DNA of 63,487 nucleotides, counting the filler, from Salisapilia sapeloensis CBS 127946 (lineage: Eukaryota > Protista > Oomycota): NCBI GenBank assembly GCA_023334545.1. It is 11 parts of 11 records of this genome, joined end to end, with 100 filler letters (N's around TTAATTAATTAA, not from the genome) between each part and the next. Parts side by side here need not be neighbours in the genome. Positions count along the whole stretch, not along the records: positions 15,485 to 17,416 come from JAADVB010001002.1; 10 more parts are not named here. One strand, given 5' to 3'. The notes under the pieces are model-generated. The model saw only the letters and a list, made by a program, of their open reading frames with translations. It ran no database searches and had not been told where the DNA came from. Shown in pieces: positions 15,485 to 17,416 of this stretch (its first letter is position 1; every line of letters begins with the position of its first letter). The position numbers and the translations under genes were made by a program.

Positions 15485-16854
15485 GAATGCTACTGGGTCG
15501 ACGACGTTGCGTGCGAGTCTCTTGGACGCGTAGTATGTGTTGTAGTAGGACACTAGCCATACGACACCGAAAGCCCCGGATCCGAGGACCTTAATGTCCT
15601 GGATTTCTGAGAAGTTGAGCTTTTTGTCGATGAGCTCTCGGTCGCTCCAGATGTCGTAGACTTTCGGTTGAGGCGATGAGCTTTGAATCTGAGATGAAGG
15701 CTGGGCTTGCGATGACGTAAGAGATGGAGCCGAGGGCTGAGCCTGGGCTTGACGCTGAGGTTGAGTTGATGAGAGAGATGGAGCTGTTGGCTGAGGCTGA
15801 GCGGAAGGCAGAGGTTGTGATGAAGAAAATTCTGGAGCTGTAGGCTGAGCTTTAGACGCAGGCCCACTCTGAGGCTGATTTGAATGCATAGCTTGATACG
15901 AAGACAGAGTTTGGGTCACTGTCTCGGTCTGTGTCGCTGTTCCATCATGCGTGTACCAATCCTCTTCCTGCTCCTCACTCTTCGTCACCGAAGCTGACTT
16001 TCGGCAACGTTTCCACCAACCTACGGCAATAGCTACAAGGAAGAGAGCAATAACGATCGGAATGACGATAGCGAGTACGTTCGGTCCATCACTTTCATCA
16101 TCGAGTTTCCATGCAGCATCGCTCTGTGAGCTCTCAGCAGCTTCTGATCTGTCCCCTGGATAACCGCTCGTCTCCCCTGAATTACCTCCACCATCGTTAA
16201 ATCTACTACCCCATGAAAATGCACTATCTGATGATTCGCTATTCGAGTCAGAATCCGTTCCTTCGTCCTCGTCTTCATCAGACGCGGCATCGCTATCTGA
16301 AGAACTCTTGGGCCCATCTACATAGATTGATAATTATTATGAATGATTCATTGCCTACGGGTATAGATTGTACCTTTTGAAGACGATGCACTTGATGAGT
16401 CTGCGCTCTCATCCTCTGGGTCTGGGAAAATCTTTTCCAGTTTGCTGTCTGCAGTCAAATCGTTTAATTCAAGCCCACCATAGGATAACATGAGTCATAT
16501 ACCGCTTAAATTTTTTACGCTTGGTACCGTTCCACCTATGAAGAGATTGCGGCATACTTCGAGACAGCCATCAAGGAACTTGTATAGATTTATGTATCCA
16601 AACTCTTTCGTGCTGACCGCGCAGTCTGGCGTTATATCCTGTGAACTTTCATACAATAATTTGCAGTTGACCGAGCAGTCCGGAGTATAATCCCCCGAAG
16701 ACAGACAAGTGCCATCTTCATCACCTGACGTTGTAACTGCACGGATAACAGCGTCTACAGCGGACTCCTGGCCTATCGTGCAGTTTTTGCTCAGCACATT
16801 AGGTAGTAAAATAGAGCTGAAAAGCACTAGAATGAGGAAAGTTGGTCGAGTCAT
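15485..16854 (-). CDS. Receptor-like TKL protein kinase: signal peptide, elicitin-like Cys domain, S/D-rich linker, TM, kinase start (3' truncated by gap)
   Basis: ATG 16854 MTRPTFLILVLFSSILLPNVLS; 7 Cys with PDC and INLY motifs; inferred 54-bp intron removing TGA at 16495-16497; intron 16318-16373; TM VLAIVIPIVIALFLVAIAVGWW; kinase LGSGAFGVVW...YASKRL. Confidence 0.75.
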
Positions 16855-17416
16855 GGCAGATGAGCTCCTGGCCACAGTATTCTAATGTGATGGTGGGGAG
16901 AGTTTCCAGTGGAAATTGGAACCGTGCTCTTTGATAGCAATTCGGTATAAAAGACTAGACTTAGGCTACCGCCCGTCTGCAATATAACTGCATTAATGTA
17001 TGTCTTCTATGACAAATGCATGACGTGGACTTGAGATAGGGCTTCAAGTGGTGATGCTAAATGACAGGCTCGTGAGCTTTGGAAATACTGTCCACCTACA
17101 CTCCGAAGATAGGTATCATACCAGACCATTTATCCATTGCCTTTTTCGGAGATTTAGTACATTACGATGCAAAGTACAAGAGCGTAGCATCGCTGCATAA
17201 ACAACACAGCGATACGAGTGAACCTGCTCTTAGGTTGAAGGCTTGGTGGTACTTCAACCACTACTTGATACATTTCTTCTAGGCTCGTTCGGTTTCCACT
17301 TTCCAGTCAATATTTTGCTCGTTTTCATTTCAGACAAAATACAGTCCCAAGTTGAGGAGGTGCCAAAGAGACCATCATATTACCTCGAGCTCTTTAAGTT
17401 TCAAGATCTGTTCATC

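Follow-up and report, generated by a model that had tools for sequence, protein, structure and literature searches.

Oomycetes, like other protists, have many single-pass protein kinases that carry a signal peptide, and the ectodomains of these kinases are mostly lineage-specific, the main recognisable one being the leucine-rich repeat (LRR) (PMC3019232, PMC10463195, PMC3681718). The number of transmembrane kinases has been put at 99 or 139 for Phytophthora infestans, by two counts, and at 131 for Saprolegnia parasitica (PMC3019232, PMC3681718, PMC10463195). All of those in P. infestans belong to the TKL group (PMC3019232), and no elicitin ectodomain is mentioned in the kinome paper of that species or in a survey of transmembrane kinases across kingdoms (PMC3019232, PMC10463195). 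Membership of the elicitins requires six Cys in a specific pattern (PMC3090399; PMC4742723). In P. sojae, sterol-loaded soluble elicitins bind the LRR receptor kinase SSRK1 (PMC11551405). We consider here a gene of the oomycete Salisapilia sapeloensis CBS 127946 (GCA_023334545.1) that lies on the minus strand of the record JAADVB010001002.1, at positions 15485-17416 of the analysed stretch of 63,487 nucleotides (the window). The evidence supports well that it encodes a real receptor-like kinase, with a sensor domain that is either new or diverged beyond recognition, and with the architecture described below as far as the piece reaches.

The gene begins with an ATG at 16854 and is cut by the contig edge at 15485. 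From this ATG, exon 1 has 117 codons, and the three exons (352 nt, 75 nt and 833 nt or more), separated by two phase-1 introns, form one frame that continues to the edge. Intron 1, with its GT at 16502-16501 and its AG at 16450-16449, was proposed in the initial annotation to remove an in-frame TGA (16495-16497). The transcripts examined are those of four public runs (X1 to X4, two samples of one study), in which two-thirds of the sampled words are present and which were compared as contigs. Each run provides one contig of 1137-1187 nt that spans 15629-16317, 16374-16448 and 16503-16875/16925 with 0 mismatches to the window across the gene. In all four, 16503 is joined to 16448 (54 nt skipped) and 16374 to 16317 (56 nt skipped), so both predicted introns are right to the base; their ends read CT..AC on the plus strand, which is GT..AG on the strand of the gene. 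The four runs can be taken as transcriptomes because the two introns and the 400 bp of intergenic sequence at 16926-17330 are missing from every one of them, while coverage resumes at 17331-17416 on the end of a neighbouring gene. The production of an mRNA that is spliced at both introns and read in one frame into the start of a kinase is thereby confirmed.

These contigs bear directly on the alternative that exon 1 encodes a small secreted protein of its own, or that the gene is a pseudogene, through a TGA that is kept in the mRNA. The unspliced genomic frame does stop at this TGA after 119 codons, as such a reading needs. The retention of the TGA was looked for in the RNA contigs: all four runs hold the spliced form, none of the contigs keeps 16449-16502, and the joint restores the frame to the kinase. 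The TGA is absent from the contig transcripts and the fused gene is therefore favoured; contigs drop rare variants and a minor unspliced form could escape, and even with this limit we regard a separate protein as very improbable. The word depth of the transcript contigs is 13-14 in sample S1 (X1 and X2) versus 65-128 in sample S2 (X3 and X4), a mere hint of differential expression, since contig depth cannot rank expression.

The features of the gene are collected in Table 1. Behind the predicted signal peptide and the Cys-rich domain, the extracellular stalk comprises about 80 residues in exon 3 and 25 in exon 2, with 19 S and 13 D among the first 73 residues of exon 3. The transmembrane helix is followed directly by K-R-C-R-K on its cytoplasmic side, as expected from the positive-inside rule. 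The S/D-rich stalk, the single transmembrane helix and the Q/P/S-rich juxtamembrane region are all found on the minus strand where they had first been placed, and the hydropathy and the basic cluster agree on a type I single-pass layout. Part of the cytoplasmic linker (15707-15850) grew by internal duplication. Matches to these low-complexity portions were set aside: the weak FAM176 and DUF matches of Pfam on exon 3 are far below the cut-offs and are noise from low complexity or from the transmembrane helix, and a metagenome locus (L001) found with exon 3 as the query matched the Q/P-rich linker alone and was rejected for the same low complexity.

Table 1. Features of the receptor-like kinase gene, in the order of transcription, with positions in the window
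Feature	Position	Strand	Basis
5' untranslated region, at least about 70 nt	16855..16925	minus	start of the spliced RNA contigs (16875-16925)
Exon 1: start codon, signal peptide, 7-Cys domain; ends in phase 1	16503..16854	minus	sequence and RNA contigs
Predicted signal peptide, residues 1-22: basic residue 3, hydrophobic core, V-L-S cleavage-type end	16789..16854	minus	inspection and hydropathy
Cys-rich helical ectodomain, residues 23-105, 7 Cys	16540..16788	minus	Cys positions, predicted secondary structure, weak elicitin matches
Intron 1, 54 bp, GT..AG, 39% GC, holds the TGA	16449..16502	minus	16503 joined to 16448 in each of the four runs
Exon 2, 75 nt: start of the acidic/serine-rich stalk	16374..16448	minus	sequence and RNA contigs
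Intron 2, 56 bp, GT..AG, 30% GC, phase 1	16318..16373	minus	16374 joined to 16317 in each of the four runs
Exon 3 (cut by the edge): stalk, transmembrane helix, linker, kinase start	15485..16317	minus	sequence, RNA contigs, hydropathy
Stalk, S/D/E/G-rich, extracellular, probably disordered	16079..16317	minus	composition; no family passes the Pfam cut-off
Single transmembrane helix, 22 residues	16013..16078	minus	Kyte-Doolittle 19-residue mean 3.3
Cytoplasmic juxtamembrane linker, 117 residues, S/Q/P/A/T-rich	15662..16012	minus	composition
Degenerate tandem repeat in the linker: period 54 bp (18 residues), 2.7 copies, 72% matches	15707..15850	minus	repeat search
Juxtamembrane motif V-Y-D-I-W-S-D-R-E-L-I-D and kinase subdomains I-II	15485..15661	minus	PDB sequence matches; 30-mer common to another transcript

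The cytoplasmic end of the piece enters the N-lobe of a protein kinase. The glycine-rich loop G-S-G-A-F-G (15566-15583, within L-G-S-G-A-F-G-V-V-W) and the candidate beta-3 lysine (15521-15523, Y-A-S-K within Y-A-S-K-R-L) provide both the GxGxxG loop and the lysine by which the eukaryotic protein kinase superfamily is recognised. All sequence and structure searches of this work were run exon by exon. With the last 67 residues as the query, 206 PDB sequences are matched at E<=10; the best 60 of these 206 are all protein kinases, with alignments at the start of the catalytic domain that open shortly ahead of the glycine loop and reach the beta-3 lysine. The presence of kinase subdomains I-II, noted initially by eye, is borne out by these matches. 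Among them are a tandem EGFR kinase construct (E 1.3e-4), AKT1 (0.074), PKC-theta (0.12), MAP3K12 (0.14) and IRAK1 (0.15), and the best matches mix the TK (EGFR), AGC (AKT, PKC, ROCK, PKA) and TKL (MAP3K12, IRAK1) groups at similar scores. The alignments thus support a reading of the last 67 residues as the start of a protein kinase domain to which no group can be assigned, and the TKL label given initially, on about 40 kinase residues, is a guess that is reasonable only for an oomycete. A word search with the portion of exon 3 that encodes the juxtamembrane motif and the kinase start found no match, with length limits that hide longer relatives.

The RNA contigs also reveal where this kinase sequence is shared. 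Their graphs fork at 15626-15658, where a contig of 265 nt, several times deeper, has the 30-mer at 15626-15655 in common with the gene. This 30-mer encodes D-I-W-S-D-R-E-L-I-D; the 265-nt contig diverges upstream of it (loose end at 15655) and still encodes V-Y before it. Because the 30-mer and the V-Y are both shared, one or more paralogues must carry this juxtamembrane motif. A contig of 139 nt in X1 and X2 stops at precisely 15485, where the genomic piece stops too. This suggests that kinase sequence repeated among paralogues interrupted the two assemblies, hence the missing kinase domain.

Does the gene encode an active kinase? An alternative is a receptor-like pseudokinase, or an incomplete kinase domain, whose role would be that of a scaffold or decoy and not enzymatic. 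Subdomains I-II alone are visible, the context of the beta-3 lysine is unusual (Y-A-S-K rather than V-A-[IV]-K), and inactivity has been predicted for many of the transmembrane TKL kinases of P. infestans (PMC3019232). On the other side, the glycine-rich loop is canonical, the lysine is present, and the contigs of X1 and X2 match the window right up to the edge at 15485. We judge this alternative to be improbable.

Taken together, a signal peptide, one transmembrane helix, a cytoplasmic kinase start and one spliced transcript are all found, and the expressed gene, of which the piece contains the 5' two-thirds, probably encodes a receptor-like protein kinase of type I with a single pass. Several points weigh against this assignment. 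The signal peptide and the topology were judged by inspection and hydropathy. The kinase is cut after about 40 residues, with the catalytic and activation loops beyond the edge at 15485, and the Pfam Pkinase model gives no score on this fragment, which is too short for it. The runs, finally, are labelled "RNA?" by guess, and their RNA nature is read from the pattern of coverage alone. Among the described single-pass kinases, those of the oomycete-specific TKL subfamilies 2-4 of P. infestans and the 131 of S. parasitica have the same signal peptide, transmembrane helix and kinase, and the ectodomains of oomycete and protist transmembrane kinases are often short or without an annotated domain (PMC3019232, PMC3681718, PMC10463195). 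They differ from the present protein in that none matches its ectodomain by sequence, while its own kinase group is unassignable from 40 residues.

The Cys of the ectodomain are residues 25, 50, 60, 64, 78, 97 and 101 of the precursor, leaving 24-9-3-13-18-3 residues between them, and it contains two P-D-C motifs and one G-Y-I-N-L-Y, exactly as they had first been read from the minus strand. With the likely cleavage after residue 22, the first Cys becomes position 3 of the mature protein. A sequon (N-C-T) is located at residue 24, and a second one (N-L-S) follows just downstream of the domain.

By sequence, this ectodomain is an orphan in the collections searched. A Pfam scan of three constructs (exon 1, mature and trimmed) reports no family at E<=10, including Elicitin (PF00964), although the HMMER filters drop most matches above an E of about 0.1 and a very weak match could be missed. 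A word search with exon 1 (117 residues) and a JGI metagenome scan with the same exon gave no match, and a feature search of the protein Atlas with the ectodomain, run twice, gave no usable one. The read-through open reading frame of exon 1 is not on record in an exact look-up in protein collections; the protein itself is missing from them, and its lineage is therefore poorly sampled. An exhaustive HMMER search of 1.84 billion representative proteins brought out no true relative of the ectodomain and one match that was rejected. This match (P0001, 1032 residues, E 4e-5) has an enzyme-like region at its N-terminus and five copies of a motif of ~20 residues that resembles the F-G-Y-I-N...G-C-L-E-V-C of the ectodomain, and we consider it a chance match inflated by repeats. 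Six or more repeats, about 80 residues long, occupy its residues from about 560 to 1032, and every repeat has a K-Y-F-G-Y-N-E-T-W...G-C-L-N-x-C motif that imitates a portion of the ectodomain. The lone phmmer match in the PDB, DIM1 (2av4, E 0.11), was likewise rejected as chance.

Two readings of the ectodomain have to be weighed against this background. It may be a lineage-specific Cys-rich domain that is unrelated to elicitins, its spacing resembling theirs by chance and the likeness being amplified by the weight that Foldseek gives to cysteines. The absence of a family or a true relative from every sequence search agrees with this, as does the general finding that, in protist transmembrane kinases, the domains other than the kinase are for the most part lineage-specific (PMC10463195). 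Alternatively, the ectodomain may be a strongly diverged and shortened elicitin-like module, as the initial annotation had proposed from the Cys pattern. The structures available for comparison are those of beta-cryptogein (1BEO and 1LRI), beta-cinnamomin (1LJP) and sylvaticin (2POS), all of PF00964, with which the present ectodomain would share a small, secreted, helical domain with a hairpin. In both, position 3 of the mature protein is a Cys, and four of the Cys intervals are similar. The present ectodomain differs in having about 84 residues rather than 98, 7 Cys rather than 6, and a connection to a transmembrane helix and a kinase.

The Cys intervals can be compared in numbers. Canonical elicitins have the intervals 23-23-4-14-23. 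When Cys 1-5 and 7 of the ectodomain are used, four of the five intervals lie within one residue of these values, and the second is 9 instead of 23. If seven Cys are placed at random, 0.05-0.08% of trials, or about 5-8 in 10,000, contain a subset of six that fits at least four of the five canonical intervals to within one residue. This figure tells against chance for one pre-specified pattern and must be read with the caution that familiarity with many Cys patterns gives many opportunities for a fit. Between Cys2 and Cys3 the ectodomain has about 14 residues fewer than elicitins, which counts against an elicitin fold, as does its odd seventh cysteine. In cryptogein this stretch holds the omega loop at the mouth of the cavity.

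Structural models of the ectodomain had to be made from a single sequence, as no alignment could be built, and the two AlphaFold runs reach a mean predicted local distance difference test (pLDDT) of 53 for a construct of 96 residues and 58.4 for one of 84 residues. Both models consist of a helix, a loop, a helix, a beta-hairpin and a helix, with low confidence in the loop between the first two helices. The hairpin starts at the Cys of the second P-D-C in both, with the C-terminal helix after it, and this order of secondary-structure elements fits elicitins and argues against an unrelated domain. Searched with Foldseek against 350,542 PDB chains, the first model places beta-cinnamomin, three beta-cryptogein entries and sylvaticin at ranks 1-5, with E-values of 0.23-0.87, probabilities of 0.23-0.38 and TM-scores of 0.34-0.40, all of these for a low-confidence model. 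The second model, searched against the same chains, returns the same five elicitin entries at ranks 1-4 and 6; the E-values are 0.20-2.2, the probabilities at most 0.51, and the TM-scores with sylvaticin 0.51/0.47, again from a model of low confidence. A shape search of the Atlas has an elicitin cluster (PF00964, Oomycota) among its ten family rows, with TM-scores of 0.51/0.44 over 79 residues.

How should these matches be read? That elicitins, a family named beforehand from the Cys pattern, come first of all PDB families with two separate models counts against an unrelated domain, and Foldseek serves here as a database-wide control. At the same time every Foldseek E-value is 0.2 or worse and no probability exceeds 0.51, which speaks for an unrelated domain. 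The geometry-only scores against elicitins are within noise; values of this size show just a common arrangement and tell against the elicitin reading. Because they are within noise, the elicitin signal must come from the combined score of sequence and local structure and not from the global shape, and it overlaps with the Cys and motif features that had been picked by eye. The top-ranking Foldseek matches and four of the five Cys intervals speak for what was proposed initially; Pfam and HMMER, where no match appears, and the geometry speak against it. Overall the elicitin reading is suggestive. To the view that the ectodomain is a strongly diverged elicitin-like module that lacks about 14 residues between Cys2 and Cys3 we assign, on these models, a chance at or slightly under even, and to a lineage-specific domain unrelated to elicitins an even one.

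A further step is to suppose that the ectodomain is a true elicitin-like module for lipids or sterols, which would make the protein a self-contained sensor that couples binding to phosphorylation. The matches with both models and with the Atlas cluster, the Cys at mature position 3, the four fitting intervals, and the beta-hairpin directly after the second P-D-C with a helix behind it would all agree with such a sensor. Its stalk and anchoring would agree too: elicitin-like proteins are often tethered to the membrane by disordered regions rich in S, T, D and E and by GPI anchors (PMC3090399; bioRxiv 10.64898/2026.04.09.717489; PMC12223298), and the present protein has the same arrangement of a small Cys-rich domain on an acidic, serine-rich, low-complexity stalk at the cell surface, where the GPI anchor of those proteins is replaced by a transmembrane helix that runs into a cytoplasmic kinase. 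The sensing of sterols by free elicitins and SSRK1 in P. sojae (PMC11551405) makes a fused form biologically plausible. Against it stand the lack of sequence-level support in any search, the geometry-only scores, and the shortened stretch between Cys2 and Cys3. The residues of cryptogein that contact the sterol are, moreover, mostly divergent even in accepted elicitin-like proteins, which may not bind sterols at all (PMC3090399). Because such proteins already lose most of these residues (PMC3090399), we put lipid or sterol sensing lower and hold it to be rather unlikely.

A possible mode of action can be outlined for the receptor-like kinase. The 7-Cys domain would be small, mainly helical and stabilised by disulfides, and would be held outside the cell on an acidic, serine-rich and probably glycosylated stalk of about 100 residues. 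It may bind an extracellular ligand, of which a lipid or sterol is one possibility. Binding would change the pairing or the conformation of the receptor, and this change could switch the cytoplasmic kinase in the way that other single-pass receptor kinases are switched.

The closest functional parallel is the pair of SSRK1 and elicitin in P. sojae, in which an elicitin and a receptor kinase work together and of which a fused form would be the single-chain equivalent. SSRK1 itself is an LRR receptor kinase that binds free elicitins, whereas the present protein is without LRR and the elicitin nature of its ectodomain is unproven. A shortened elicitin-like lipid carrier that is fused in one chain to a transmembrane kinase, as a natural single-chain counterpart of the elicitin and SSRK1 co-receptor, is a rather unlikely interpretation. 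If it were true, such a "Rosetta-stone" fusion would be independent evidence that elicitin-type domains are ligand-presenting sensor modules of receptor kinases. Elicitins, long regarded as sterol carriers and triggers of plant immunity, would be physically linked to a signalling kinase; the family is described as unique to oomycetes. An elicitin-like ectodomain would also support the co-receptor model of sterol sensing (PMC11551405). If the ectodomain is unrelated to elicitins, it would be a new small Cys-rich sensor domain without relatives among the 1.84 billion representative proteins, a result of narrower interest. Protist receptor kinases are numerous, but a known ligand or a sensor domain that can be recognised is lacking in nearly all of them; the present gene is expressed, its model is verified to the base, and its compact outer domain of ~84 residues should be easy to express.

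Some minor features of the locus remain to be described. The third-position GC of the coding sequence between 15485 and 16854 is only about 0.46, the GC content of the introns is 30-39%, and the donor sites of the two introns are G-T-A-T-A-T and G-T-A-C-A-A. In these respects the gene is presumably unlike the GC-rich genes of Phytophthora, Saprolegnia or Pythium. A scan of the piece against Rfam gave no match. Upstream of the gene, the plus strand reads T-A-T-A-A-A-A at 16946-16952 (T-T-T-T-A-T-A on the strand of the gene). These bases precede the outermost end of the RNA contigs (16925) by 21-27 nt and may be a TATA-like element of the core promoter. A second transcribed unit is found at 17331-17416, where contigs of all four runs begin at 17331-17371 and leave through the right edge; every one of them differs from the window at a single base. 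An open frame on the minus strand enters from that edge and closes with ...L-K-E-L-E-V-I, its stop codon lying at 17375-17377. This unit looks like the 3' end of an upstream neighbour on the same strand, about 400 bp from the transcript start of the kinase gene.
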